Notes: generated by a model not told the origin, from the sequence alone. Shown: positions 1,072 through 55,641, counted from the stretch's first letter. The stretch is 64,000 nucleotides of DNA from Macrostomum lignano (GCA_002269645.1 NIVC01001571.1:11970-75969), one strand, 5' to 3'. A program made the numbers and translations.

Positions 1072-4000
1072 TCAAGAAGAATAGAACACGATACGACCGT
1101 CGGAACCGCCGGTGACAAGCCAGGGCAGGCGAGGATGAAAGTCGCAGGCGGTGACTCGCACAATCCCGCTGCCGCCGACGCTTCCAACTTGATGGCCGCG
1201 CAGGCGTTTCACTGGCACTAGCAGCGGATTCTCTAGCAGGTCGGCGTACACCCTGCTGTGCAGCACTAAACAGCTGCCATCGTCGCTAACAGACGCGCTT
1301 AGTGGCAGCGACGGATGAACGACGCATTGTCGGACTCCGTCGGTGTGAATTCGAAGCTGCTTGTAGGGAGTGCAGGCTAAATCCAGATCGAACCAGGCCA
1401 AACGGCTGTCCAGACTGCCGGCTAGCAGGTGGCAGCCGGTTGGATGAACGCTGAGACAGCTCAACGCGCGGGCGTTTGGCTTCAGAGTCTTCAGCTTGGT
1501 GAGCTTGGCCAAGTCGTACACCTTTAGTAGGTAGAGTTTTAATTGTGTTCAAATTTGAATTCTAATGCTTACATTTGATTGACTCCCAAAAATACCATGA
1601 GTGCCACATTGAATCTCAAAAGTGTCTTATACTGAATCTTATGAGTCTCAAGAATGCTGAGTTTTATGATTCTCATGCTGAATCTTATAAGTCTCATACT
1701 GAATCTCAAGACCCTCATAGCGAATTTCAAGAATATTCTGAGTCTCAGGAGTCTCGTATCGAATCTCAAAACTCTCGTGCCGAGTTTAGAGTCTTATACA
1801 GAGTCTCATGAGTCTCATAACGAGCCTCATACCGAGTCTCATGAGTCTCATACTGAGTCTCAAGAGTCCCATACCGAGTCTGAAGAATCTAATACTGAGT
1901 CTCATACCCAGTCTCACGAGTCTCATACTTAATCTCATACCGAGGCTTAACACTCTCATATCGAGTCTAAAGAGTCTCATACCGAGCCTCATGAGTGACA
2001 TACCGAGAGTCATACTGAGTCTCATAAGTCTCATACCGAGTCTAAAGAGTCTTATACTAAGTCTAAAAGTCTTAAACCGAGTCTCATGAGTGTCAAACCG
2101 AGACTCATACTGAGTCTAAAAGTCTCATACCGAGTCTAAAGAGTCTTATACTAAGTCTAAAAGTCTCAAACCGAGTCTCATGAGTGTCATACCGAGACTC
2201 ATACTGAGTCTCATAAGTCTCATACCGAGTCTAAAGACTCTCATACCGAGTCTAAAGACTCTCATACCGAGTCTAAAGACTCTCATACCGAGTCTAAAGA
2301 CTCTCATACCGAGTCTAAAGACTCTCATACCGAGTCTAAAGACTCTCATACCGAGTCTAAAGACTCTCATACCGAGTCTAAAGACTCTCATACCGAGTCT
2401 AAAGACTCTCATACCGAGTCTAAAGACTCTCATACCGAGTCTAAAGACTCTCATACCGAGTCTAAAGAGTCTCACACCGAATTCCAAGACTCACTTGAAT
2501 CCTAGCCTTCTCGGCCACGTAGAGCACAGGCTTCACCGGATCGAACTGGGCACAGCAAACCGCCGCTGTGGCCGCCTTCTTGCCGGCGCCACCTAACGGA
2601 GACTGGCTAGATCTAGTCGTCAGCCGGTGCACCAGTAGGGAGCCGCTGTCAGATACGGTCAGAAAATAATCACCCTGACGATGCCAAGCAAGCTGTTTGA
2701 CACCGCCTTGAGCAGTAGGCAATTGTACAGTTGCCAGAGTGCGAGACTTTGTTATTGCAGCGCCATTAGCGGACGCTTCGGTGGAGAGAATAGTCCAAAT
2801 GGCTGCTGACTGTTGCTGCTGCTGTTGCTCGCCAGAAGTGGTGGCCCAAGCTTCGGCAAATCGAGATGCCAACAGCCGGTCGCAGCTGATTAGTTCAGTG
2901 TGTAGTGGGGAAATACTATCTTAAATACTATGAATAACTAAATTTCACTAGCAAAAAATGCGTTTATTTACTGGCTTTAGTAAGTAGCAAAATTAGCGTT
3001 TTTTTTTATTTTCGGCACTTTTTCCAAAATATTATTCAAACAGGGAAGGGGTGGTACAGAAAGCTCAGCCTCTCTACTAGCTCACTTTAAACGCTATTTT
3101 ACTTAATTTTACGTACTACTCGTACTACTCTCTGATTCGAAGGTAAGCATGGACTAAAAAAGAAACAGATGTCGATTTGTTTCACATACCGACACACAGA
3201 AGACACATACCAATTCTATGAAAAAATACTGATTCTGAGAAACTGATACTGATTCTGAGAAACAGATACTGATTCTGAGAAACAGATACTGATTCTGAGA
3301 AACAGATACAGATTCTGAGAAACAGATACTGATTCTGAGAAACAGATACTGATTCTGAGAAACAGATACAGATTCTGAGAAACAGATACTGATTCTGAGA
3401 AACAGATACAGATTCTGAGAAACAGATACTGATTCTGAGAAACAGATACTGATTCTGAGAAACAGATACTGATTCTGAGAAACAGATACAGATTCTGAGA
3501 AACAGATACTGATTCTGAGAAACAGATACTGATTCTGAGAAACAGATACTGATTCTGAGAAACAGATACTGATTCTGAGAAACAGATACTGATTCTGAGA
3601 AACAGATACCAATTCTAAGAAACAGATACCAATTCTAATAAACAGATACCAATTCTAAGAAACTTATACCGATTCTAAGAATAGATACCGATTCTAAGAA
3701 ACAAAAAACCAGTCCTAAGAAACAGATGTCGATTCCAAGAAATCGATAGATTCTGAGAGATCCATACAGCTTCCACGTAATTGCTAGACTCTAATAAATA
3801 GAAATTTAAGAAATTGATGAACTTATTAAATCGATAGGCATTCTAAGAAAAAGATACAGATTCTAAGAAACAAAAATACACACTTGATCATTTTTTATAA
3901 CTCTCACCGATCCGTAGCAACCAGGTACACCCGTCCGGAGCCCGCTCCACCAGCGGCGATGCACGGCCTATCGGCGCACGGATTCCACGTGGCCGAGACC

Positions 4001-6999
4001 AGGCCGCCTTCACTTGCGGACTCCAACTGGGCCGACCAGGCTCTATAGCCGGTGGTGAGTTCGAATACGGCTAGGCGGCCGCCGGCGCCTGACGCGGCAA
4101 ACCATTGACCGCTGGGATCAACAGAGCAGGCGGTGATGGGGAGCGGCTGCTGACTGTCCTGAGCCTCCTCTGGCCAGGCCAGATACTGCAACACGCGCAG
4201 ATGTGGAAAAGGTCGCAAATCTCTTGGAGCGGGCAATTTGGGCAGCAGATCCTCAGGATCCATGCTAACCCGATGTCGGACAACTCGGGCCGCCAGATGT
4301 AGATCTTGGCAACGCTCGTAGCTGAGTTAAGCAGAGTTGGCGATGGTTAGAAATTGTTAGAAATACAGAATGAAAGTAGCGACCCATTACATGAGGCAGT
4401 TTAAAGCCTTAAACTTATGTAGTATTATGTAAGCCTACAAAGAATCTACCGTCCAACAGTCTGTAAGCCGCTACACCTCAACGATCCTTACAGTCTGTAA
4501 GCCGCTACATCTCAACAGTCCTACAGTCTGTAAGCCGCTATATCTCAACAGTCCTACAGTCTGTAAGGCCACAAAAAAGTTCCCTATTCGCTAAATCGCT
4601 AAAATTGCACAGCAGCCTCACAGCTCCGATGTGTATCCTGGATACGCCGGCACGCGTCGCAGAGCCGCGTATTTGGTTGGCACAAAGTTAACACGACGCT
4701 CGTAATCCTCTTGATTGCGCCATTTCTCCAATTCTTCGTCATCGAATAGGTACTCCTCTGGCGGATTGTAGCTCTCGTAGTGCGTTGGCGGCGCCTATGA
4801 ATATTGTAATTTTGCTAAAAAATTGGCTCATTTTGCTGAACAAAAAAAGCTATCAATCGATCAAAATATCAATGAATCAACCTATCAAACTATTAATGAA
4901 TGAATCAATCAATTAATCAATCGATCAAAATATCAATGAATCAACCTATCAATGAATCAATCTACCAAACTATTAATGCATCAGTCTATCAACTAATCAA
5001 TCGATCAACCTATCAATGAATCAATCCATCAATAATTCAACCTATCAACCTATCAATGAATCAACCTATCAAACTATTAATGAATCAATCAATCAATTTA
5101 TCAATCGATCAAACTATCAATGAATCAACCTATCAATGAATCAATCTATCAAACTATTAATGCATCAATCTATCAATTAATCAATTGATCAACCTATCAA
5201 TTAATCAATCTATCATTTAATCAATTCATCAACCTATCAATGAATTAATCGATCAACCAAATCGCCTATCACTTCATCAATCTGTCAAGTCACTACCTGG
5301 TCAATTTTACCAATCTGCTTAATCAATCAATTATCTACCAAGACCATAAAGGTACTAGGTACCTTCTTAGGCGGCCTAATATAAGGCAGTTTCCGTCTAA
5401 TAGCTTCGTCCTCGTCGCCAGCCTGCCGATCCCAGATGTCGTAAAATCTGTTGGCATTGTCACCTCGGGCGGCAGCTTCGCGTTGGCGACGCGCTTCGGC
5501 CCGCTGCTCACCGGTGAGCATCCAGCCCATCTTGATGGCGTGCACCATGCGCCCCACGCGGAGCCGCTCCCATTTAGATGGCACAAACGAGCTTTTACTT
5601 GGCGGGTGAGCAGTCACGGGCGTTGCCATGGTGTCAGAGGTGAACCAGTCAGTCTGAGAAGATTGGACAAATTAAACATACAGATTTAGACATTTTCTAG
5701 AAAAGTAAGACACAGCTAGTAGATATCCTGACACAAACTAAACACACCCTGACACAAACTAAACACACCTTGACACAAACTAGACACACCCTGACACAAA
5801 CTAGACACACCCAGACACACCGTGAAACAAACTAGACACACCCAGACACACCCTGACACAAACTAGACACACCCTGACACAAACTAGACACACCCTGACA
5901 CAAACTAGACACACCCAGACACACCGTGAAACAAACTAGACACAACCTGACAAACTAGACACAATCTGACACAAACTAGACACAATCTGACACAAACTAG
6001 ATACAAGCTGACACAAACTAGACACATCCTGACACAAACTAGACACACCCTGACACAAATTAGACACACCCTGACACAAACTAGACACAATCGGACACAA
6101 ACTAGACACAATCTGACAAACTAGACACAATCTGACACAAACTAGACACACCCTGACACAAACTACATGTAGACACACCCTGACAGACACAAACTACATG
6201 TAGTCACCTGACAAACTACATGCAGACACAACCTGACACAAACTAGACACCCTGACACAAACTAGACACCCTGACACAAACTAGACACCCTGACATAAAC
6301 TAGACACAACCTGACACAAACTAGACACCCTGACACAAACTAGACACCCTGACACAAACTAGACACAACCTGACACAAACTAGACACCCTGACACAAACT
6401 AGACAACCTGACACAAACTAGACAACCTGACATAGTGACAGTGAACACTGAAACACCGCAAGGAGACACCCTGACACAAACTACATGTAGACACAAAGTA
6501 GACACACCGATACACTCAGACACAAATAACAAACAGCTGACTTGCTTGAGTGAAATAGGACACATCCACTGAAACAAATCAGGCGCGTCAAAGTCAATCG
6601 GACAAATTAACGAAATTCCCAACAATAAACAATTCAGCTTACGTGGTCCTCGTATGGATCAACATTGGGATCCGGCACGCGACCCCGCACAATGTTCTTA
6701 ACTAACTGTACATCCTCGTCGCACAGAACAATTCGCTGCCCAGTTTTGGGGTCGATAACAGTTCTCCAGTATTCTGGATCGTCCATCTTGGCCATGAAAT
6801 CGTCTAACTGATCCCCAGTGTCTGGCTTCATCAGTTTCCTACCCTCGGTATCGTAGCCAATATGAGGATATTTTGTATACCAATGCATTGGCACGTTGCC
6901 AACCGTATTGCGTATGTCCTCATCATCAGACGAATCGTAATCATATTCGTCTGGAGCTGTCAGAGGCGATTCAATTGGCTGCTTTTTAATATCCGACAT
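1072..6999 (-). CDS. BOP1: Ribosome biogenesis protein BOP1/ERB1 (PeBoW complex WD40 protein), 6 exons: 6999-6643, 5653-5363, 4794-4622, 4321-3908, 2885-2495, 1521-1072 (2076 nt, 691 aa)
   Basis: Hallmark motifs: [116 protein letters not shown]. All five introns are GT-AG and the phases join into one open frame. Confidence 0.97.
1580..2490. repeat. 21-bp minisatellite (GAGTCTAAAGACTCTCATACC) filling BOP1 intron 5
   Basis: Near-perfect tandem units at ~2220-2470 and degenerate units from 1580. Same family as 1..905. Confidence 0.95.
3225..3780. repeat. 20-bp minisatellite (GATTCTGAGAAACAGATACT) in BOP1 intron 4
   Basis: Exact 20-bp periodicity at 3241-3600, decaying at the 3' side. Confidence 0.95.
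4455..4565. repeat. ~33-bp tandem repeat (CAGTCTGTAAGCCGCTACATCTCAACAGTCCTA) in BOP1 intron 3
   Basis: About three copies, with CAGTCTGTAAG at 4457, 4491, 4524 and 4557. Confidence 0.85.
4850..5325. repeat. Degenerate ATCA-based (ATCAATGAATCAACCT) repeat in BOP1 intron 2
   Basis: Reiterated ATCAA/TCAAT motifs fill nearly the whole intron. Confidence 0.85.
5725..6520. repeat. ~21-bp minisatellite (GACACAAACTAGACACACCCT) in BOP1 intron 1
   Basis: Visible tandem units. ORFs 5905..6111, 5936..6190 and 6380..6625 are its translations. Confidence 0.92.
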
Positions 7000-7087
7000 T
7001 GCTAAAGCTCTGCAATATTGTTAACAGAAAATGGTTTATATTGGTTGTGTTAATGTAGGGGCTTTGTAAAACGTGCTTGTAGCTTAA

Positions 7088-7390
7088 GGGGTTGCAGCCT
7101 ATTGGTTAGAGCGTCGGACGCACAACTGAAAGGTCGGGGGTTCGATTCTCGACCATCTCGAAAAAATTGTGTCCTTGAGCAAGACACTTAACTCTGCATT
7201 GCTTCAGTTCACCCAACTGTAAAATGGGTGCCAGCATTAGCTGGGGTAATTGAGGGTGTGTGGCGACCCCCCAGTCGTTGGACTGAACAGAATTACACAG
7301 CCTTCAGATGCGTATGCAACAGCTGCGGCTGAGCTGTCAATTGCACATCTGCCCATTAGGGCAGGTTTAATTATTTATTATTATTATTAA
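7088..7390 (+). mobile_element. tRNA-derived SINE with CORE/Meta-like central domain and (ATT)n tail
   Basis: A-box-like TTGGTTAGAGC and B-box GGTTCGATTCT head, then GTGTCCTTGAGCAAGACACTTAAC...CTGTAAAATGGG (resembles the MIR CORE consensus), a unique 3' tail and (ATT)n. Other copies occur in the window. Confidence 0.8.
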
Positions 7391-14956: not shown

Positions 14957-15719
14957 TGTGGTAGTACGGTCTTTCACGGAGGTCTGAGACAGCTAATTTT
15001 TGCATGAACTTTTTGCAAAAACCCTTCCCCGTATCCCCTCTTCGATGACAAAATTTGTCGTTATCGCCTGTCCGTGGCCTGCCCCATTTGTTGTTCCTCC
15101 GGTCCTGTCCCTGTTTCCCGTGGCTGTCCCTCTCATTGACCCATCCTGTGTTTTATTTTGTTTTATCTGTTTTTCTGCGGGATTTCTCTCGTTGACCCAA
15201 CCAGTGGGCTCCCTTTCCTCTGGTTGACCCGCTGGTTGCTCCGCTCTCTGCCCCACTGTTTGCCCCATGCGTTGGCATTGTTCCCAACTACTTTTTATAT
15301 GGCCGTCCCGGCCGCATTTATTGCATGCTATTGCTCGTGCGCGCTCGTTTCTCTTGCTCTTATCCTTGTACGTTTACGTTTGTTCCTTTAAGTTCGAGTG
15401 TGAGCAATTGCGTTCTTCTTTATTTAGCTAATAGACCTTAAGTAATAGCGTCAGCCTTTGCGTAAACTACCAAGTACTTATTCAGCACCCTCGGCACAGC
15501 CGGATTAACTCTCGTTTCGTTTGTTGTAATACCTGTCGGCGACTAATAAACAACTAAATAGCACCTGCTCATTAATTATTTTCATTAAGTAATCGAAGCC
15601 CTTTATATTGTTTATCTTGAGTTATTTGCCCACGGGGCGTAGCAATCAATAAGTCTCAATCTCAAAGAAAGCTCTGAGACCTAAACGTTCCGTAATACAA
15701 AATTACGGTGGTGGCAGCG
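14957..15719 (+). mobile_element. Putative LTR end plus primer-binding site of a truncated Ty3/Gypsy-like retrotransposon
   Basis: TGGTGGCAGCG at 15709-15719 is complementary to the 3' end of eukaryotic tRNA-Leu(AAG/UAG)+CCA. It is preceded by AATAAA (15545) and an ...AATTAC end. The left boundary is approximate; no gag/pol or second LTR is seen. Confidence 0.45.
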
Positions 15720-20254: not shown

Positions 20255-21966
20255 TCAAGCGTCCGCATCGAGAAGCTCCTCAGCTGGTCCTGGTTCGGGC
20301 CGATCCGCGGCCTCCTCGCCCTGCTGATCGAGCTGGCGCTGCCGTTTCTGAACAATTCTGAGGTGCACAGCGTGCATCTCTCTGTAGTTACGACTGATTT
20401 CTTCCGGATCAACGTAAACGGGGCCCATGTCCATCACGACGGCTGGTTCATCGTTGTTTTCGTCGCGCCACTTCAGCAGCTGGCACACATCGTTTCTGTA
20501 CTTTTTGTTCAGTACGATGAAGACTAAGAAGCTGGCAGCGCAGTCAACTGTGGCAGACAGATCGATCAGCGGCACAGAATAGTCCGGCAGTAACTTAAAC
20601 AAGTTGAAAGTGACGCAAACCATTCCAGGCAGCTCGAAGACAATGAAAACGACAGCGAGTCCCAGTACGATGTGCGTGGCGAGCAGATGGCTGGCGGCGT
20701 GAGCCTCGGCCTGGGCGGCGTCAACCTCGCCCGGTGGTCTGTTCCGTTGAATGAACAGCTTCAAAGCGGTGGCAACGGTAGTCAAGAAGATCACAGTGAT
20801 GGGCACGTATGTCTGCGGAGTTCGAGTGAGGTGCATTTGCACCTCCAACAGAAGGTACTCGCTACCATTCAGGAAAACGTTCCAGATGACGTAAGTCCCA
20901 GTCACAGAGATGAGCACGATCAGCATCACCACGACGAAGGCGTAACGTTGAAAGCGGCTCGTAATCCACTGCTGGAACAGGAACGGCTTGAAGGTGGCGA
21001 AGCAGCGGAACCCGCTGAGGCAGGCAGTCCACATGTTCCTGAGAGACAGGCTGTACGAAACCAAACAGTAGAGCAGCTGAAAGGAACAAACCCAGATTTT
21101 TCCTATTTACATGAATCATCTACTCGAATATGAAGTTGCTAATAAGCATATCAGGCTTTAATTTCGTAGAAACTTCTAACGACTTCTAAGATAGCATATA
21201 GAGGCAGCTACGAGCGTATGCCCGAAACTGTAGGAAAAATCACTGGAAAATTCCATCACAAGTCGAAAATTTTACAGCTTTTTTGGCGTCCCAGCTATTC
21301 CATGTTTTTAGGTAGAGGGTTAGGGGGTCCTGTATATGAGTCGAGATTTTATTCGGATAATGGAGCCTGATGGAGGCCCCGAACCAGAGGGGGTTACAAG
21401 ATGTAGGCGGGGGGTCTGTAGATGTTCAAAGATTCAGCTGAATCGACAGCGACACCACGCCCTTCTGTAATTCGTCTTCATTGCCTCTAAGCCCACGACG
21501 GCCCCCGAAGCTTCCAGGCCTGACAAGCCTTCTAGAATGAGAATGTCTAAAAAATGACTCGAAGACGTCAGGGGATTTAGAGATGATAATAACCTGCATT
21601 AAGCGGTTAAAACTTAACTATATATCTTCCGAGAGCGCATGTATGCACATAGAAACGAAAAAAACGCTCATTTGAAATTCGGACTCACTTCGAACATGAT
21701 GCCTCCTTCTTCGGTCTTCTCTGTCACTACAAGCATTATATCGTAAATTGCATAGCAACAGATGGACACCGTGAAAACCATATTGCTTATTTGCATTAGA
21801 TACAGGCCTGTGTTGACTTGCTGAGCCATCTGTGTTCGATTGTTCTTCAACAACATCACCGACATAACACCGTTCAGCAGACCAACAATGGCCAAAGGAA
21901 TGTTGATCCGCGAACGAGTATGTAACCGTTGGTGTACGTTGCGTTCGGTATTGTCTCGTTCATCAT
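20255..21966 (-). CDS. Divergent class A (rhodopsin-like) 7TM receptor, 2 exons (21966-21689, 21076-20255), with an apparent 1-nt frameshift near 21910
   Basis: Seven hydrophobic segments: TM1 INIPLAIVGLLNG, TM3 ending SGFRC (DRY position), TM6 VVFIVFELPG (FxxxxLP), TM7 SFLVFIVLNKKYR. Phase-0 GT-AG intron. The upstream MMNETIPNAT frame carries two N-glycosylation sequons but is offset by 1 nt. Confidence 0.7.
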
Positions 21967-23365: not shown

Positions 23366-25479
23366 AGAGACGAAAAGACGCCAGCAGCCAATGAAAATTA
23401 AAACAAGAAAATTAAAACGAAGAATGGCTGCTCAAGACGGAGGGGGCAGATCAGAATGAACCAGCCGCAGGGAGAGGAGAGACGAGAATGCAAGGGTGGG
23501 GGCAAGGGAATTGTGAAATGCAGCTCAAAACAGAACCAAGAAGTTGCGGCACGAGAGTCAGACGCGTTTACCGATAAGCTAACCTGCCCCTCAACTAGAC
23601 AATTTTAGATTAATATAGCTGCGGGAAGATTTTAGTATTTGATGTTGAAGGCCGTGACTAGTCCTTGACCTCCGTTACCAAGCAACCCTGATGACGTCAC
23701 CCGTCAGCCACGCTGTGATTGGACGAGAAATTGGGGTGGGGCGCAGCGAAAAAATGATTTTGTGGTGGAGGATTTTACGTAACAGACAGAAAAAGGTTGG
23801 GGAGATAGGTTATAAAACTATCACACGCATGAAGGATTTCAACAAACAATTTAGAAAGGAGATGGGGTTTGGTGCGCGGGGAGTGGGGTGGGAGATAAGC
23901 ATGATTCATCGTATCACGGTTGTGTGGGGCGCGAGTGTCAATGTGCCATCCTTTACGTTGACAACACGCCCCCGACAATTCCGTCATTGCGGTACAACCT
24001 GAAATCCGTCAGCAGCCAATAGGTAGGCTTCGTAGTCTGAAACATGAACCCACATGAACCCAATGGGTTCAAAAGTTCTATAAACACAGGAGTTCCGATC
24101 GCCGGTCCAAAAGAGTTATTTCTCAGCTCCCAAATAAGAGATTTACCGACCAGGAAAAATCCTGGAGGTGGATATGGCCGCTCGCCCGGTAGTCCTTAGG
24201 CAGTGGACGGACGAGCTGGCGAAAACTCTCGGGCCTGAAAACGTCCGGAAAGAAAGATCCGTCCGTTTGGGCCGAGGTAGGTGAGCCTGTACTGAGTAAC
24301 TACAGGCGGGGCATTCACGAGGCGTTTGACGGGGATTCACCTTGACTGACCAGCTCTACAAGAGCTCTAAGTCTCTAGGGACGTTTCTTTGGAACCTGCG
24401 GTTAGCCTCCACATGTACATACAGTAAGTCTTTGTGTAGGCTCTTTTACACCGATACAATGACAAGTCAAAAAACGGTCATTATTACACCAATTCAGCAA
24501 CTTCAACCTTCATTTGTTTCAAACTGATACATGTAAGAGCAGGCATATTACATGTACTTTGTTTCTTGGCAGTTTTGGAATTTATGTCCTCTGTACGCGT
24601 AATAAATGTACATCATACTATCTGCCCAAGTGACCAACCAGTTCGCCCAACCCATCTGTCTTTCTCTCGTCCAATCAAATCTATTAATAAATAATTAACT
24701 GGAATGAAAGTGTGAAGGTTAAAAATCGATAAAATCGTATGGATTGTTCAGCGCGTGGCTTGAGTTTACACCAGGCCCGCATACTACTGGTAGTAGCTGA
24801 TTCTTGTCCCAAAAGGTTTAGATGGTCTGGAGAAAAATGATAAAACCGTAGCAAACATTCCGCGTATCATTTTAAAAAAATCGGATGACAATTACAAATT
24901 AGCTATTGAGAAGAAGCAATAAATTTTATAATGTCAAAAAGATTTCGGTTTTGTAGACAAAACCAAGAACCGGCACTCATCACCCTTCAGTTAATATTGA
25001 TTGGTCAAACGTTGTTTAAGTTTGTTAATTAACGCAAATTAACAATTTAAAAGTTTTAAATAAAAGTGTTTTTCAGGCTAATATATATATAGCTCGTATA
25101 TAAGAATCAAAGCACAACCTATGATTAAAATAATGCTGAATTTACAAGAGTATAGTGAATGGTTAGCAAGAAAAGATCATTAAAAATGCAAGGTACAAGA
25201 CCAACACGCGCACATAACTACATCAACAAAAATTGATTAATGATCACAATCTCAATAGTTCCAGATCTGACTAGAGGTCATCATCAAAAGTCATCAGATG
25301 GTTTTGAACTGAAGTTGAAATGACGGAAAAATGACTCGAAATTCATGCACAATGAAGCCAGCACAGTAAAGCCAGGATATACTCGTACTTCTTTTTGATT
25401 AGCATAATAATACTTAACAACCCGAACTCTCCACCGACCCTGGATCTCAGGCGCGATTTTTATCCTAGATCACCGATCC

Positions 25480-26260
25480 TGGATCTCTGACCCGGGATCT
25501 CTGACCTGGGATCTCTGACCTGGGATCTCTGACCCTGGATCTCTGACCCGGGATCTCTGACCCGGGATCTCTGACCTTGGATCTCTGACCCGGGATCTCT
25601 GACCCTGGATCTCTGACCCGGGATCTCTGACCTGGGATCTCTGACCCTAGATCTCTGACCCTAGATCTCTGACCCTAGATCTCTGACCCTAGATCTCTGA
25701 CCCTAGATCTCTGACCCTAGATCTCTGACCCGGGATCTCTGACCCTAGACCTCTGACCTGGGATCTCGGACCTTGGATCCCCGAGCCTGGATCTCTGACC
25801 CTGGATCTCTGACCCGGGATCAAAGGTCCTGGATAGCGCCTGGATTTCGGACATGGGATCCTCGAGCCTGGATCTCTGACCCGGGATCAAAGGTCCTGGA
25901 TAGCGCCTGGATTTCGGACATGGGATCCTCGAGCCTGGATCTCTGACCCGGGATCAAAGGTCCTGGATAGCGCCTGGATTTCGGACATGGGATCCCCGAG
26001 CCTGGATCTCTGACCCGGGATCCTTGAGCCTGAATCTTTGGCCCTGGATCTCTGACCCGGGATCAAAGGTCCTGGATAGCGCCTGGATTTCGGACATGGG
26101 ATCCCCGAGCCTGGATCTCTGACCCGGGTCCTTGAGCCTGAATCTCTGACCCTGGATTTCTGACCCTAGATCCCTGAGCCTTGATCTTTGACCCTGGATC
26201 TCTGACCCGGAATTCTTCAGCCTGGATTTCTGACCTTGGACCTCCGACCATAGAACTCCG
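25480..26260. repeat. 14-bp minisatellite (GGGATCTCTGACCC) grading into a 67-bp higher-order repeat
   Basis: 14-bp periodicity at 25480-25800, and GGATCAAAGG at 25817, 25884 and 25951. Confidence 0.93.
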
Positions 26261-26329
26261 ACCCTAGATCTCCAGAACATGCAGATGCAAGTGAAGGAAT
26301 GTTAAACGCATGGGTCAAAGCAGCTGGTC

Positions 26330-29300
26330 TCAGCCCTGCAAGCTGTCCCGCATCAGGCCCAGCAGCTGTTCCTGCGGCAGCGCCTGAACAGCGCCAAACA
26401 GAGACAGCCAGGCGCGCCCAGCCCGCGCTAACGGACCGGCCAGGAGCTCCGCGCACCTGTTGTATCGTTCCGCGAAATCGTGCGGCCCAACCGAGTACAG
26501 GTGAGCGTAGAGAGCCCCAGCTAGGCGGTTGAGAGACTCCAGCCTGGCCGACTGGCAGCTCGGACAGGCGCCAGCTTCGGCCGAACTCGGCGCCAGACCG
26601 GACAGCGCCGCGACAAGCGCTACCGCCGTCTCGTCGCCGAGACTCCAGTCGGCCAGGCAGACAACGGCCGGGCACAGTTCGGCGAGGCTACCGACGCCTT
26701 CGGGCGCGCCGGCGGCTAGCGAGTCGCACAGTCGACGCAGCGGCAGTCGAAGTCGAGCGTCGGCAAACAGGCGCAACTCGTCGTCGTGTCGGCTGTAGGC
26801 CAGGCAAGTCAACGGTGCGGCGCCGAACGCCAGAGCGGCGCGGAGGTGGCCGCTGAGACAGCAGGCGCCCATGCCGGAGGAGGCGCATCCGGCAAAGAAG
26901 CCGGTGAGACGGCGCAGAGCGGCGATAGCCTGTTATTAGCAAAGCAAGTGTGTAATCTACCTGACTAAGTGTGTAATTTACCTGGCTAAGTGTGTAATCT
27001 ACCTGACTAAGTGTGTAATTTACCTGGCTAAGTGTGTAATCTACCTGGCTAAGTGTGTAATCTACCTAGCCAAGTGTGTAATCTACCTGAATAAGTGTTT
27101 AATCTACTTGGCTAAGTGTGTAATCTACCTAGCCAAGTGTGTAATCTACTTGGCTAAGCGTGTAATCTACCTGGCTAAGTATGTAATCTACCTGGCTAAG
27201 TGTGTAATCTACCTAGCCAAGTGTGTAATCTACCAGACTAACTGTGTAATCTACCTGGCTAAGTGTGCAATCAATCTAGCCAGGTGTGTAATCGATCTAG
27301 ACAGGTGTGTAATCCATCTAGCCAGGTGTGTAATCGATCTAGACAGGTTTGTAATCCATCTAGACAGGTGTGTAATCCATCTAGCCAGGTGTGTAATCGA
27401 TCTAGACAGGTTTGTAATCCATCTAGACAGGTGTGTAATCGATCTAGCCAGGTGTGTAATCGATCTAGACAGGTGTGTAATCCATCTAGACAGGTGTGTA
27501 ATCCATCTAGACAGGTGTGTAATCCATCTAGACAGGTGTTTAATCCATCTATACAGGTGTGTAATCCATCTAGCCAGGTGTGTAATCCATCTAGACAGGT
27601 GTTAAATCCATCTATACAGGTGTGTAATCTATCTAGACAGGTGTGTAATCCATCTAGACAGGTGTGTAATCCATCTAGCCAGGTGTGTAATCCATCTAGA
27701 CAGGTGTGTAATCCATCTGGCATCCAGGCATCAGACGTCCCTAACCTGAAGGCAGGCGTGGCCAGCCAGAGGCGGCACCGACTGCGAAACGCCAGAGTTG
27801 TCGGCGGCAGCAACTGCGCCCCGACTCGGCGGTTCTAGCGACAGCCCGGCGGGCCCAAATCGACGGTAGAGCGACAGAACGCTGGAGGTCAGGGCGAGCC
27901 GCTCCGGCCGCGCCTCCAGACTGCCCGGTTGGCGGGCTACGCCAGCGAACACGGAACGAAGATTGGCCTCCTCCACAGCCGGATCGGACAGCAGGCCTTG
28001 CAGAGCCGCTTCGGTTTGTGCGGCCCGAGCCACCATGCCGGCCAGGGCGACGAAAGCGGCGTCGGACGCGCTCGGCGCTGGCGCCGGCGCCAGCGGGGGT
28101 GGGGGCGGTGCCGCCGTTGGAATCTCAAGCTTTATACGGGCGTCGTCTGTTGGCGGTGTTTTTAGTTTGAAAAAATCCCAATGCCACTAATTAGTATTCC
28201 TACATTTCTACTATAAGTATAGTAGTTAACAAAATGGCACTGTCGTTAATTTTAAAGAAGCAAAATTTTACTATTATTTACTGCTAGCAGAGTAAAATTA
28301 AAACACGGAAATAATTTTGAATTGGGTCACAATGGTAGGTCATGCCAAGTGATCAGAAAGCTACATGAGTCTCAACAGTGGGTCACAATGGTAGGTCATA
28401 CCAAGTGATCAGAAAGCTTTAGGTCACAATGGTAGGTCAGCCCAGTGATCAGAAAGCTTTAGGTCACAATGGTAGGTCAGCCCAGTGATCAGAAAGCTTT
28501 AGGTCCCAATGGTAGGTCAGCCCAGTGATCAGAAAGCTTTAGGTCCCAATGGTAGGTCAGCCCAGTGATCAGAAAGCTTTAGGTCCCAATGGTAGGTCAG
28601 CCCAGTGATCAGAAAGCTTTAGGTCACAATGGTAGGTCAGCCCAGTGATTAGAAAGCTTTAGGTCACAATGGTAGGTCAGCCCAGTGATCAGAAAGCTTT
28701 AGGTCACAATGGTAGGTCAGCCCAGTGATCAGAAAGCTTTAGGTCACAATGGTAGGTCAGCCCAGTGATCAGAAAGCTTTAGGTCACAATGGTAGGTCAC
28801 AAGAGCAAACACAGCAGCAGACTGGCGCCTCACCGGAAACGTCACCACTTTCGACGCCCAACTGGTTCAGAGCGTCAGCGGCCGCGTCAACTCCGGCGGG
28901 CTCGTCGCCGGAGCATCCAGCGGTCGGAGCTCCGGCCCCGGACCCGGCGGAAGCCGCTTTGCCAACTTGCATGTATCCGGGATCCAGGCCAACAGAGTAG
29001 CACTTGGCTAGGCGGCATGCTGGGCAATCGTTTCGGGTTGTCTTGGTAACCAAACAGTAGGGAGAAGGTCTCGAAGCGCTAGTGTCCCCGTTATCATCTT
29101 GCTGCCGTTTTAATTGCTGCTTTTTGCAGAACAACGTTTTAGCGGAATTCCGCCGGAAGAAGTGCTTGCAAGACTCGCAGCAGACTCTGCCGAAATTATA
29201 ATTGACGGCCAGGTCTCCGCACACGGTGCAGACCCGCTGCTCCGCCGGTTCGCCAGGTTTGGCTTTTTTCTTGGAGTGCCGCTTCCGTTTGGGCGGGTCG

Positions 29301-29383
29301 GCGGGGGCGGAGGCGGCTGGGGCAGGGGCGGAGGACAGGGCAACGACGTCGCTCTCTGTGAGAACGGATAAGTCTGACTGCTC
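26330..29383 (-). CDS. Nuclear hormone receptor, HR96/DAF-12 (NR1J/NR1I)-like; exons 29383-28834, 28146-27746, 26929-26330 (516 aa, start codon not found)
   Basis: C4 zinc-finger [30 protein letters not shown]...[19 protein letters not shown]. The P-box CESCK is typical of NR1I/J. A Pro/Ala hinge and helical LBD-like C-terminus end LLGLMRDSL. The GT-AG introns join in phase (1, 0). Confidence 0.85.
26945..27720. repeat. 21-bp minisatellite in NR intron (GTGTAATCTACCTGGCTAAGT grading to GTGTAATCCATCTAGACAGGT)
   Basis: Tandem units fill the intron 27745-26930, with two subtypes in adjacent blocks. Confidence 0.95.
28330..28800. repeat. 40-bp minisatellite (AGGTCACAATGGTAGGTCAGCCCAGTGATCAGAAAGCTTT) in NR intron
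   Basis: About 11 near-identical units. Confidence 0.95.
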
Positions 29384-29439
29384 CTGAAGTTTATTGCAGG
29401 TTTTAAACTGTATTGGAATGTGGGCAAATTTCACGGGAA

Positions 29440-30065
29440 TGTGAGATAATGAAGGGAGGGCAGTGTGAGATAATGAAGGGAGGGCAGTGTGAGATAATGA
29501 AGGGAGGGCAGTGTGAGATAATGAAGGGAGGGCAGTGTGAGATAATGAAGGGAGGGCAGTGTGAGATAATGAAAGGAGGGCAGTGTGAGATAATGAAGGG
29601 AGGGCAGTGTGAGATAATGAAGGGAGGGCAGTGTGAGATAATGAAGGGGTGTGGGATAATGAAGGGAGGGCAGTGTGAGATAATGAAAGGAGGGCAGTGT
29701 GAGATAATGAAGGGAGGGCAGTGTGAGATAATGGAGGGCAGTGTGAGATAATGAAGGGGTGTGAGATAATGAAGGGGTGTGAGATAATGAAGGGAGGGCA
29801 GTGTGAGATAATGAAAGGAGGGCAGTGTGAGATAATGAAGGGAGGGCAGTGTGAGATAATGAAGGGAGGGCAGTGTGAGATAATGGAGGGCAGTGTGAGA
29901 TAATGAAGGGGTGTGAGATAATGAAGGGAGGGCAGTGTGAGATAATGAAGGGAGGGCAGTGTGAGATAATGAAGGGAGGGCAGTATGAGATAATGAAGAA
30001 AGGGCAGTGTAAGATAATGAAAGGAGGGCACTGTGAGATAATGAAGGGAGGGCAGTGTGAGATAG
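29440..30065. repeat. 24-bp minisatellite (CAGTGTGAGATAATGAAGGGAGGG)
   Basis: Tandem units. They account for the spurious N-terminal 200 aa of ORF 28784..30031. Confidence 0.95.
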
Positions 30066-30519
30066 TTATCAGAGGAGGGAAGTGTATTGGCAAATTTCAG
30101 CCTGTTAAAGTAAATTAAAATAACGAAGCGAGTGCTTACAAGTCAATAGTAGTTTTAAAAAAAATTAAGCACACCAGTTGCTGGAACTGTGCGAGTGTCT
30201 AAAATTTACTATAAATCATTCATGAGCTATAAAGACTTAACAAACTCAGCTGTATTTACATATTATCCATATTTACCACACCTGCAAACTCTAGATTAGA
30301 ATAGAAATAGATAATTACACAAATATTAGAATCATCAGTTTAGCATTGTATGACCTTATCGTAAAAACGGAATTCATGGATTTTAATTATTTATCAGGGA
30401 AATATAAGAATGTATCGTAGACACACGCCAAAACAATTTAAATAATAATAGACAAAGCTTAAAAGACATTTCATTCAGCTATTGAGCAAATAATCTTGAA
30501 ATAGGCCTAGAAGTTAGTG

Positions 30520-30840
30520 GCGGCACATCAAAAGAACTGGGGTAGAGAGAGGGCTAGCCGCGGCACATCAAAGGAACTGGGGTAGAGAGAGCTAGCGGCG
30601 GCACATCAAAGGCACTGGGTTAGAGAGAGCTAGCGGCGGCGTATCAAAGGAACTGGGGTATAGAGGGCTAGCGGCGGCACATCAAAGGCACTGGGTTAGA
30701 GAGAGCTAGCGGCGGCACATCAAAGGAACTGGGGTAGAGAGAGCTAGCGGCGGCACATCAAAGGAACTGGGGTAGAGAGAGCTAGCGGCGGCACATCAAA
30801 GGAACTGGGTTAGAGAGGGCTAGCGGCGGCACATCAAAAA
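30520..30840. repeat. 38-bp minisatellite (GCTAGCGGCGGCACATCAAAGGAACTGGGGTAGAGAGA)
   Basis: About 8 units, with CAAAGG at 30721 and 30759. Confidence 0.93.
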
Positions 30841-30956
30841 ACGACATCACAGGTAAAGTAGCATAAACAAGGTAGCTGAATAAAAAATTAAGAAATTACA
30901 CACTAAACTCATATTTACAGCGCAGAATGGAACACTGTTAACGAATTTCTTACACA

Positions 30957-33381
30957 TCACCTACGCTTATGAGTATAATAGTGCCTACTTTCTCTGGGTA
31001 CGCCCAGCAAGTCGCACATGTGCATGCACACGAAAATGTAATAGGCGTACAGGCCCAAAACTAGCAGTATAACTTTCCAAATCTGCGACGATATGGCGCG
31101 CGGGATCTGAAAGATTTTTTAAAAAATGATGAATTACAATAAATATGTGAGACATAAGGATGAGAGACAGGGAGATAAGGATGAGAGACAGGGAGATAAG
31201 GGTGAGAGACAGGGAGATAAGGATGAGAGACAGGGAGATAAGGATGAGAGACAGGGAGATAAGGATGAGAGACAGGGAGATAAGGATGAGAGACAGGGAG
31301 ATAAGGGTGAGAGACAGGGAGATAAGGGTGAGAGACATGGAGCTAAGGATGAGAGACAGGGAGATAAGGATGAGAGACAGGGAGATAAGGGTGAGAGACA
31401 TGGAGCTAAGGATGAGAGACAGGGAGATAAGGGTGAGAGACAAGGAGCTAAGGATGAGAGACGGGGAGATAAGGATGAGAGACAGGGAGATAAGGATGAG
31501 AGACAGGGAGATAAGGGTGAGAGACAGGGAGATAAGGATCAGAGACGGGAGATAAGGATCAGAGACTGGAGATAAGGATGAGAGAACAGTGAGTCAGAAC
31601 AGAGAGAAGGGTGATTGAGACATAATTGAAATAAACGAAGGATAATGCATTGGAAAAACCGGCTTACAAAGGACTTATGCACGGTATAATATTTGTCGCA
31701 GGTCAGATAGCCGCAAACTGAATCGTACAGCTCGGCTGCAATAGAAAATAGAGTATAAGAAATGAAAAATTCGTTTTTATAAAAAGCATTAAACTACTAA
31801 TAGTAGCTGACTTATACTAGCCTGCGCCGCTTACTTTGAACAGCTTTGCCTGTCTGACCAGAATGAGTGCACGAGGCTACGGCTTGCTTGAAAAATGGAT
31901 TTGACAGGGTTGAGAAGTTAGGTTAATGCTAGATTACGAGATTAGTGTTTCGATTTAAAAATAGCATAGATAAAAAAGCTGATTATTACAATGCATTTCT
32001 CCATTAAGGGCAGCATTTGGGCCTCCTTGCACAGAGCCTGTCGCCAGAAGTCGAAGTTCTCGGGCAACGATAGAACGCGACAGCGCAGCAGGGGACATGC
32101 GTCCGCTAGGCATGCTGTGCCATTCTGTTTAGGGTAGAATTTTGATAAACTTAGTGCTAATTAGTCTACGTAGCGTTAAGAGATGGGCTAGGGTAAGGCC
32201 AACTGTCTAGACTGACCAATCAGACACACCGGAGTGAAGTGGGTCTGCTGGGGTAAAGCCCACTAACCAATTAGACACACCGGAGTGAGGTGGGTGTGCT
32301 GGGGTAAAGCCCACTGACCAATCAGACACGCAGGAGTGAGGTGGGTGTGCTGGGTAAAGCCCACTGACCAATCAGACACACCGGAGTGAGGTGGGTGTGC
32401 TGGGGTAAAGCCCACTGACCAATCAGACACGCAGGAGTGAGGTGGGTGTGCTGGGTAAAGTCCACTGATCAATCAGACACACCGGAGTGAGGTGGGTGTG
32501 CTGGGGTAAAGCCCACTGACCAATCAGACACACCGGAGTGAGGTGGGTGTGCTGGGGTAAAGCCAACTGACCAATCAGACACGCAGGAGTGAGGTGGGTG
32601 TGCTGGGGTAAAGCCCACTGACCAATCAGACACACCGGAGTGAGGTGGGTGTGCTGGGGTAAAGCCAAATGACCAATCAGACACGCAAGAGTGAGGAGGG
32701 TGTGCTGGGGTAAAGCCCACTAACCAATCAGACTCACCGGAGTGAGGTGGGTGTGCTGGGGTAAAGCCAAATGACCAATCAGACACACCGGAGTGAGGTG
32801 GGTGTGCTGGGGTAAAGCCCACTGGCCAATCAGACACGCCGGGTGTGGTGTGGATAAAGACTACTGTTTTCGAGTTTTAGCATAACACTGAACATCGCTC
32901 ACAGCCACAGTCTCCGGATGTCGCCTCTCGTAATGATTCCAAAGCGACGACTCTCTATAGAACGACTTGCCGCAGTAGCCGCACTGCCAATTGCTGACAC
33001 TATTGGCAAATGTTCGTTTCTCGTTGTCATAGTAACGGCTTGGTTTAGGTTGGAATAAACAGCCGGGAGGCATCTCGGCCGAGTGACGTTCGAAAATAGG
33101 AAGGATCAACTGCGGATTAGGGAGTTAGGAACTAATTTTAAAGACTGATACAATTCTACCTTTGATCACATGCACATCAATACTAGATATGAACTGCTCA
33201 CTTTTTCTATGATACTAAGAGCCTCCTTGGACTTCTGCCGACTGCAGCGGTCGCTTCTAGAGCTGTCATCTGCTCGATAGCCAATAGGCAACAAAGCGGC
33301 GAGAATCAATACAGTAGCAAGCTGTCTCGCCGATGGCAAAGGGCGTGCCACCGATAGACAGAACGGTCCAATAGAAGTCAT
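30957..33381 (-). CDS. Signal-peptide, cysteine-rich 'C2H2-like' protein with C-terminal TM anchor; 6 exons: 33381-33202, 33109-32903, 32124-31990, 31886-31835, 31735-31668, 31106-30957 (263 aa)
   Basis: Hydrophobic N-terminus [12 protein letters not shown], then [68 protein letters not shown] and [18 protein letters not shown]. All five GT-AG introns join in phase. The start ATG is uncertain. Confidence 0.8.
31150..31585. repeat. 21-bp purine-rich minisatellite (GAGAGACAGGGAGATAAGGAT)
   Basis: Tandem units in the last intron of the C2H2-like gene. ORFs 31126..31575, 31160..31555 and 30985..31443 are artefacts. Confidence 0.95.
32210..32845. repeat. 51-bp minisatellite containing CCAATCAGACAC
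   Basis: CCAAT at 32216, 32267, 32318 and onward, ~12 units. Confidence 0.95.
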
Positions 33382-33479
33382 GAAATCCAATTCATTTTTT
33401 TTATAAATCAAAGCATTCAAGTATTACTGATATTTTATTGAAACACATGAGTGAGGGGTTGTATTGAACTGGTAAGAAG

Positions 33480-36057: not shown

Positions 36058-55641
<19,584 letters not shown>

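Follow-up and report, generated by a model that had tools for sequence, protein, structure and literature searches.

A nuclear-receptor gene without a start codon of its own was identified on the minus strand of a 64,000-nt stretch of the Macrostomum lignano genome (hereafter the window), which is part of contig NIVC01001571.1 in assembly GCA_002269645.1 (Mlig_3_7) and to whose positions all coordinates refer. The gene encodes MlHR96-5, a divergent HR96-like receptor, and its three exons join in compatible phases into 516 codons plus a stop. On the genomic sequence, we give a probability of roughly one half to the proposal that the missing initiator is supplied by spliced-leader (SL) trans-splicing at position 29383, with the AUG at the end of the leader serving as the start codon. 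The primary transcript would begin upstream of a 24-bp minisatellite, either at the promoter of the preceding gene (in a two-gene operon of Mlig020853 followed by MlHR96-5) or in a 450-bp unique AT-rich segment (30065–30514). The 35-nt leader would be joined to the acceptor CTTCAG/ (a slash marks the splice site), its terminal AUG would come to lie in frame with exon A, and translation would then yield a receptor beginning M-E-Q-S-D-L. This interpretation, put forward in an initial annotation of the same DNA, is partly supported by the evidence presented here.

Exons, DNA-binding domain and absence of a start codon

The locus is present in three genomic copies, which were found via the annotated protein of the upstream gene: the copy in the window (L003, NIVC01001571.1), L002 (NIVC01000093.1) and L004 (NIVC01000507.1). 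The gene and the sequence immediately upstream of it have the following features.

28834–29383, minus strand: exon A, comprising a 50-residue Met-less N-terminal region, the DNA-binding domain (DBD) and the hinge; ends in phase 1 at the donor TTTCCG/gtgagg
28985–29233, minus strand: zf-C4 DBD with 8 of 8 Cys and the P-box CESCKH; finger II is C-X23-C, versus the usual C-X5-C
27746–28146, minus strand: exon B, with acceptor ccaacag/AC and donor CTTCAG/gttagg in compatible phases; 98.5–98.8% identical in the other copies
26330–26929, minus strand: exon C, with acceptor aataacag/GCT and stop codon TGA at 26332–26330; C-terminal region, all-helical in a low-confidence model
29384–29389, minus strand: candidate SL trans-splice acceptor CTTCAG/, which fits [T/C]TNCAG and is the same in all three copies
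29390–29395, minus strand: AATAAA hexamer directly before the acceptor motif, 6 nt from the first base of exon A; may serve the upstream gene as a poly(A) signal
29440–30064: 24-bp minisatellite, 27 copies by Tandem Repeats Finder (TRF); its length varies among the genomic copies, and in L004 it is interrupted by an antisense fragment of a long interspersed nuclear element (LINE)
30515–30838: intergenic 38-bp minisatellite, 8.5 copies by TRF

The 5′ boundary of exon A has the context aaacctgcaataaaCTTCAG/GAGCAG, with the first base of the exon at 29383 in phase 0, and the GC content rises there from 37% to 60%, as fits an exon boundary. A DBD exon starting at this acceptor in phase 0, with no Met before the zinc fingers, had been described in the initial annotation, and its coordinates, strand and translation agree with ours. 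Exon A encodes the C4–C4 double zinc-finger DBD characteristic of nuclear receptors (Pfam zf-C4 on the exon A translation, E = 2.4e-15, 57 bits against a cut-off of 21.1, residues 51–133) and matches 87 nuclear-receptor DBDs in the PDB (best E = 9e-11). Supplement 3 of Wu & LoVerde 2021 (PMC8363021) gives the peptide of its first finger letter for letter under the header '>MlHR96-5 (prjna371498 scaffold:Mlig_3_7:scaf1047)'. The contig NIVC01001571.1 is scaf1047 in Mlig_3_7, and the compared stretches of the window are identical to it; the exact peptide match and the contig identity confirm that the organism is a flatworm, as had been supposed, and that the species is M. lignano. In the same study MlHR96-5 was placed in HR96 from the first finger alone and has no GenBank protein accession in the comparison table (PMC8363021).

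Finger II has 23 residues rather than five between its first two Cys, an 18-residue insertion that gives a 16-residue gap in the alignment with NR5A2. All three genomic copies carry this stretch, in which they show a single Y/N difference, and since the stretch contains no GT it represents an insertion and not a retained intron. It is probably the reason why the first finger alone was listed by Wu & LoVerde. With the M. lignano HR96 (NR1J) paralogues MlHR96-2/-3 and PAA90734.1 (Mlig010675g1), the receptor shares a first finger of the form CxVCGD...NFG..CESCKxFFRRN, a basic patch before the DBD and the finger II end C-P-A-C-R-L-A-K-C. The P-box is CESCKA in the M. lignano HR96s, and the HR96/NR1J group has a DBD of standard length; MlHR96-5 has instead CESCKH and the C-X23-C spacing, and further differs from its paralogues in lacking an ATG of its own and in a C-terminal half that is unrecognizable by sequence as a ligand-binding domain (LBD). 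The C-terminal 305 residues gave no Pfam match, no PDB sequence match and no BLASTP similarity to a paralogue LBD; a single-sequence AlphaFold model of the region is all-helical, albeit of low confidence (predicted local distance difference test score (pLDDT) of 47). An LBD in this half of the protein is plausible from the model. A word-index protein search with exon A matched nothing, and a HMMER search of 1.8 billion representatives returned paralogues and generic nuclear-receptor DBDs, and no protein containing MlHR96-5.

The 50 residues ahead of the first finger Cys in exon A include no Met, and the first in-frame ATG of the exon, within the sequence GYMQ, lies downstream of the DBD. The frame of exon A is open upstream through the 24-bp minisatellite to approximately 30031, again without an ATG; the repeat is open in every one of the three frames, so this openness carries little weight. 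Scanning of the SL-joined mRNA and of the intergenic DNA gave no AUG of the mature mRNA's own from which the full-length protein could be made. The spacer between the stop codon of the upstream gene and exon A measures 1573 bp (29384–30956), of which the two TRF arrays make up 949 bp, or 60%, bearing out the earlier description of this 1.57 kb as mostly minisatellite. Enumeration of phase-0 ATG...GT candidate exons in the spacer gave 13, none with a GT[A/G]AG donor, in line with the earlier failure to find a convincing ATG-bearing exon there. Only two GTRAG sites are present in the spacer, at 30953 and 30139, and these are phase-incompatible or have an in-frame stop ahead of them.

Spliced leader, acceptor and reading frame

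The M. lignano spliced leader is a 35-nt sequence, CGGTCTCTTACTGCGAAGACTCAATTTATTGCATG, that ends in ...TTGCATG (PMC8629364), its 3′ portion being ...TTATTGCATG. Trans-splicing affects approximately 30% of the genes and approximately 15% belong to operons, [T/C]TNCAG is the top-ranking trans-acceptor motif, and 35% of cis donors lack GTRAG (PMC8629364). The general premises of the initial annotation, that flatworm leaders end in AUG and that some flatworms process polycistronic transcripts by SL trans-splicing, thus hold for this species. In a Macrostomum genome paper the final ATG of the leader is termed the likely start codon.

On the minus strand of the 1573-bp spacer the motif [T/C]TNCAG occurs at three sites, with exon starts at 29383, 30281 and 30180, and only 29383 is in frame; CTTCAG/ is the only such motif adjoining exon A. 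Between 30139 and the 29383 acceptor there is no GTRAG donor, and the acceptor therefore falls under the rule, as cited in PMC8629364, that an acceptor lacking an upstream donor is trans-spliced. When the leader is joined in silico to exons A–C, its ATG is in frame 0 with a 517-codon open reading frame (ORF) with no intervening stop, and the predicted M-E-Q-S-D-L... start is reproduced. The later ATGs of this mRNA are at positions 322 and 401, both out of frame, and at 447, which is in frame but past the DBD. The context of the leader AUG has T at −3, a weak base, and G at +4.

Two other arrangements were examined and rejected. Mini-exons in the 5′ untranslated region (UTR) that begin at the 30281 or 30180 acceptor, end at the 30139 donor and feed into 29383 have lengths of 142 and 41 nt, which put the SL AUG out of frame. 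The paralogue PAA73279.1, annotated as 'partial', provides no precedent for SL-AUG use, since its acceptor TTTGCAG/CTGTAA sends the SL AUG into a TAA and its own ATG follows 27 nt downstream. No SL sequence was found in the window at ≤3 mismatches, and hence no SL gene lies within it; an Rfam scan of the window gave nothing at gathering score.

Several observations weigh against initiation from the leader AUG. Agreement of its frame with exon A has a one-in-three chance and the acceptor motif is short, so that the match, real as it is, is no strong statistical evidence alone. A second in-frame acceptor, ATACAG/ with an exon start at 29407, could be used instead, which leaves the exact junction uncertain by 24 nt. 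The nearest paralogues, PAA90734.1 and PAA73279.1, have their own ATG, so leader dependence is no family trait. Exon A is contained in no protein of a 15-billion-protein collection that holds two M. lignano gene sets, and at none of the three copies does the GenBank annotation call a gene downstream of Mlig020853. The annotation of this genome is, however, incomplete: the first exon of the BOP1 gene in the same window is likewise absent from the M. lignano annotation of the collection (57% matches at best in the word-index search), and the missing call of MlHR96-5 is therefore weak evidence and no proof of silence. Lastly, with approximately 35% of M. lignano donors departing from GT[A/G]AG, a mini-exon with a weak donor could be real.

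The arrangement resembles that of the SL-AUG mRNAs of Schistosoma mansoni (Cheng, Cohen, Ndegwa & Davis 2006; 'slORFs' in PMC9851317), in which likewise a flatworm SL ends in AUG, the acceptor abuts an AUG-less ORF and the full-length protein depends on an in-frame SL AUG. For that species, PMC9851317 and PMC12582326 cite Cheng et al. 2006 for an in-frame SL AUG in 28% of trans-spliced mRNAs and for more than 40 cDNAs that depend on it. MlHR96-5 differs in belonging to a free-living macrostomid and in that its trans-splicing is inferred from genome sequence. Literature searches found no published list of SL-AUG-dependent genes for M. lignano. MlHR96-5 would be a further example of a flatworm mechanism known since 2006, and the known picture of flatworm trans-splicing would be unchanged. 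If confirmed, a transcription factor of a free-living, genetically tractable flatworm could be made only after trans-splicing, and production of the receptor would depend on trans-splicing as well as on transcription. Annotation pipelines that trim the whole leader, including its ATG, turn SL-AUG genes into 'partial' or missing models.

Selection across three genomic copies and alternative explanations

All three receptor exons are present in each genomic copy at 98–100% identity; their junctions and the sequence aaacctgcaataaacttcag/GAGCAGTCA do not vary, and each copy lacks the ATG. L003 and L004 differ by 15 synonymous and six non-synonymous changes and one in-frame 3-bp deletion; across the copy pairs pN/pS is 0.15–0.30 (P = 3e-5 versus neutrality). 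In exon A the non-synonymous share of the changes is 3/8. The synonymous bias and the intact ORF indicate purifying selection. This speaks against a dead gene, and the ORF therefore requires a start codon of some kind; since the bias includes exon A, the DBD is translated. MlHR96-5, earlier a first-finger genome fragment, is thus a complete, selected three-exon gene that current annotations have missed.

Among the alternatives, the one that survives best, although unlikely, is an unrecognized ATG exon, either in the spacer with a non-consensus donor or further upstream, that is cis-spliced to 29383 and gives a longer N terminus. Nuclear-receptor genes often have separate 5′ exons, and the 13 phase-0 ATG...GT candidates include, for example, ATGAGTTTA/gtgtgt at 30912–30904. 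None of the 13 has a consensus donor, however, and by estimate (the null was not computed) their number is no more than expected from 1.5 kb of random sequence. The unique part of the spacer diverges near the synonymous rate and nothing in it looks constrained. Moreover, the 50 residues that exon A encodes before the DBD already exceed the whole A/B region of the paralogues (22–43 residues).

It is improbable that the locus is a silent or decaying duplicate, one of many recently amplified HR96-like genes, which lost its start and is untranslated. The lack of a gene call and of a containing protein in the collection would fit such a duplicate, as would the unusual 18-residue DBD insertion and the C-terminal half with neither LBD similarity nor a confident model; M. 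lignano has 16 HR96 genes with much divergence among them, according to Wu & LoVerde. Yet the ORF is intact over three exons in all three copies, the sole indel is in frame, the splice sites are all kept, and the excess of synonymous over non-synonymous changes given above departs from neutrality.

The two genes could also share alternative 3′ exons, with a phase-0 donor of the upstream gene (that of exon 31735–31668 or an earlier one) cis-spliced to 29383 so that the transmembrane (TM) exon is skipped and an in-frame fusion results. The donor TTT/gtaagc and the acceptors at 31106 and 29383 are all of phase 0, the joined sequence is free of stops, and in parasitic flatworms cis- and trans-splicing are reported in the literature to share acceptors. 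An older UniProt model, A0A1I8F372 (P0190), joins both genes. Phase-0 compatibility is, however, common by chance, and a signal peptide and Cys-rich luminal domain ahead of a nuclear receptor make little biological sense, which renders such a fusion very improbable. The model A0A1I8F372 (ML2 annotation; maps to 33396–27917, minus strand) was rejected as evidence of cis-splicing, since it omits the zinc fingers and reads parts of the receptor exons in the wrong frame; an indel-rich assembly probably gave rise to this model as a prediction artefact. Nothing else in public data hints at a pipeline joining the two genes.

Least probable by our estimate is trans-splicing at or near 29383 with a start at a non-AUG codon or at the GYMQ AUG (the latter giving a DBD-less product): the weak −3 base of the SL AUG (despite G at +4) and the non-AUG initiation documented on SL-bearing mRNAs in other phyla would allow it, but a scanning ribosome reaches the SL AUG first, the in-frame AUG at 447 comes only after two out-of-frame ones at 322 and 401, and the synonymous bias covers exon A, so that the DBD is translated.

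Upstream gene, operon question and other features of the window

The gene preceding MlHR96-5, Mlig020853, bears on SL-AUG initiation at the receptor through both its own 5′ end and its position. Its features are as follows.

30957–33381, minus strand: Mlig020853, encoding a signal peptide, one C2H2-like motif and a C-terminal TM segment; stop codon TGA at 30959–30957
33381–33202, 33109–32903, 32124–31990, 31886–31835, 31735–31668 and 31106–30957, minus strand: exons of Mlig020853 in a six-exon model
33378–33384, minus strand: 5′ end of the 'partial' annotated coding sequence, which starts with ACT (33378), the codon after a genomic ATG

The six-exon model is 99–100% identical to GenBank PAA91212.1 and PAA66296.1 and places the start of the last exon at 31106, correcting the earlier coordinate of 31108. 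Of the five donors, four are of phase 0; the last donor, which closes the 31735–31668 exon, is one of them, and a skip of the terminal exon to 29383 therefore stays in frame.

The sequence before ACT is ..TTTCATG in L003 and L002 (L002 9990–10003) and ...GGATTTCCAG/ACTTCT, with a TTCCAG acceptor, in L004 (9990–10003). In L004 the site TTCCAG/ is a perfect [T/C]TNCAG, and the copy needs the SL AUG because no in-frame ATG lies between the preceding stop and ACT. Older UniProt models read ...NELDFQTSIG across the same site. For the Mlig_3_7 annotation, reads were mapped after SL trimming, and the pipeline cut transcripts at the SL sites so located. From its sequence, Mlig020853 is probably trans-spliced before ACT and takes its Met from the leader. 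The assembly was polished with Pilon on RNA-seq plus genomic reads, and this polishing may have put leader bases into the genome at trans-splice sites, of which the CATG of L002 and L003 may be an instance. Against this idea, sequences resembling the SL 3′ tail are not enriched in the window (243 versus 254 expected at ≤3 mismatches; tails of at least 8 nt, 2 versus 2.2 expected). Either way, the start of the neighbouring gene supports SL-AUG initiation operating at this locus. A broader reading is doubtful: that Mlig020853 and MlHR96-5 are both start-less in the genome and take their Met from the leader, possibly in one operon, and that polishing overwrote ..TTCCAG/ with ..TTCATG/ in two of the three upstream-gene copies. 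If the acceptor was overwritten in this way, false genomic start codons in the assembly would hide SL-AUG-dependent genes genome-wide.

In M. lignano an operon is defined by a repeat-adjusted distance of less than 1 kb and a trans-spliced downstream gene, repeats being known to inflate intercistronic distances (PMC8629364). Mlig020853 and MlHR96-5 are neighbours with a common orientation, and no gene on the opposite strand separates them; in L004 an antisense LINE fragment alone intervenes. Subtraction of the two arrays gives an adjusted spacer of 1573 − 625 − 324 = 624 bp, which is under 1 kb, and approximately 600 bp in L002 and L004 (arrays and insert subtracted by hand). The pair thus scores as an operon by the published rule if MlHR96-5 is trans-spliced. 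It resembles M. lignano operons (Ustyantsev & Berezikov 2021, PMC8629364) in its adjacent co-oriented genes, repeat-dominated spacer, adjusted distance of less than 1 kb and apparently trans-spliced upstream gene. It is unlike typical ones in that approximately 624 bp sits in the tail of the distance distribution, far from the mode of approximately 100 bp, and in the LINE fragment of one copy.

The distance and the LINE fragment both count against co-transcription. The spacers of the three copies measure 1573, 1622 and 5195 bp, the last being the LINE-bearing one. The fragment itself, of approximately 2.5 kb, is an antisense 5′-truncated non-LTR retrotransposon within the 24-bp minisatellite (L004 14258–16561, minus strand), with a 767-residue ORF containing reverse transcriptase- and RNase H-like sequence. 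A further point against an operon is that the unique spacer of L004 diverges from that of the other two copies by 2.7–3.2%, about the synonymous rate. Co-transcription of Mlig020853 and MlHR96-5, as read from the sequence, is possible at best and leans towards unlikely.

In spacer-less operons (C. elegans SL1-type, Ciona, Oikopleura) the trans-acceptor of the second gene is preceded by an AAUAAA at a distance of a few nucleotides, and one site serves both the 3′ end of gene 1 and trans-splicing of gene 2. The AATAAA directly before the MlHR96-5 acceptor is reminiscent of this organization, which here, unlike in those operons, would need a 1.57-kb minisatellite-filled 3′ UTR for the upstream gene. 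The hexamer is the only AATAAA on the minus strand across 25064–33434; weaker variants occur at 30387 (ATTAAA) and elsewhere. As no AATAAA occurs within 5 kb after the MlHR96-5 stop, the hexamer before the acceptor may be dispensable or coincidental. The 118 nt that follow the upstream stop (30839–30956, minus strand) are identical in the three copies and contain no AATAAA, whereas the adjacent unique spacer differs by approximately 3% (P ~0.03); this stretch is probably a constrained proximal 3′ UTR of the upstream gene.

All recognizable protein-coding genes in the window are on the minus strand, a long co-oriented run of a kind expected in an operon-rich genome. The remaining genes and ORFs are listed below.

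1072–6999, minus strand: BOP1
20255–21064, minus strand: seven-transmembrane-like ORF
36058–39579 and beyond, minus strand: gene encoding 1068 residues of low complexity
51109–51669, 52203–52943 and 55228–55641, minus strand: other ORFs

Positions 15316–15327 of the plus strand reproduce 12 nt of the leader's 3′ end without a mismatch (ATTTATTGCATG), and a GTGAGC donor (~15400) follows after 72 nt. The site was rejected as an SL RNA gene because no GTAAG follows; the match may have arisen by chance (~0.01 expected for a 12-mer), or leader sequence may have overwritten a second trans-splice site. The start of BOP1 is preceded by ATTGCAG/AGCTTTAGCAATG (7005–7015, minus strand), which places a trans-acceptor motif 10 nt ahead of the ATG; an SL AUG there would open a short out-of-frame upstream ORF. 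Just upstream of BOP1 (7100–7260, minus strand) lies a tRNA-like stretch (..ggtcgagaatcgaacccccgacc..) with the appearance of a short interspersed nuclear element. Introns and spacers throughout the window are packed with minisatellites.

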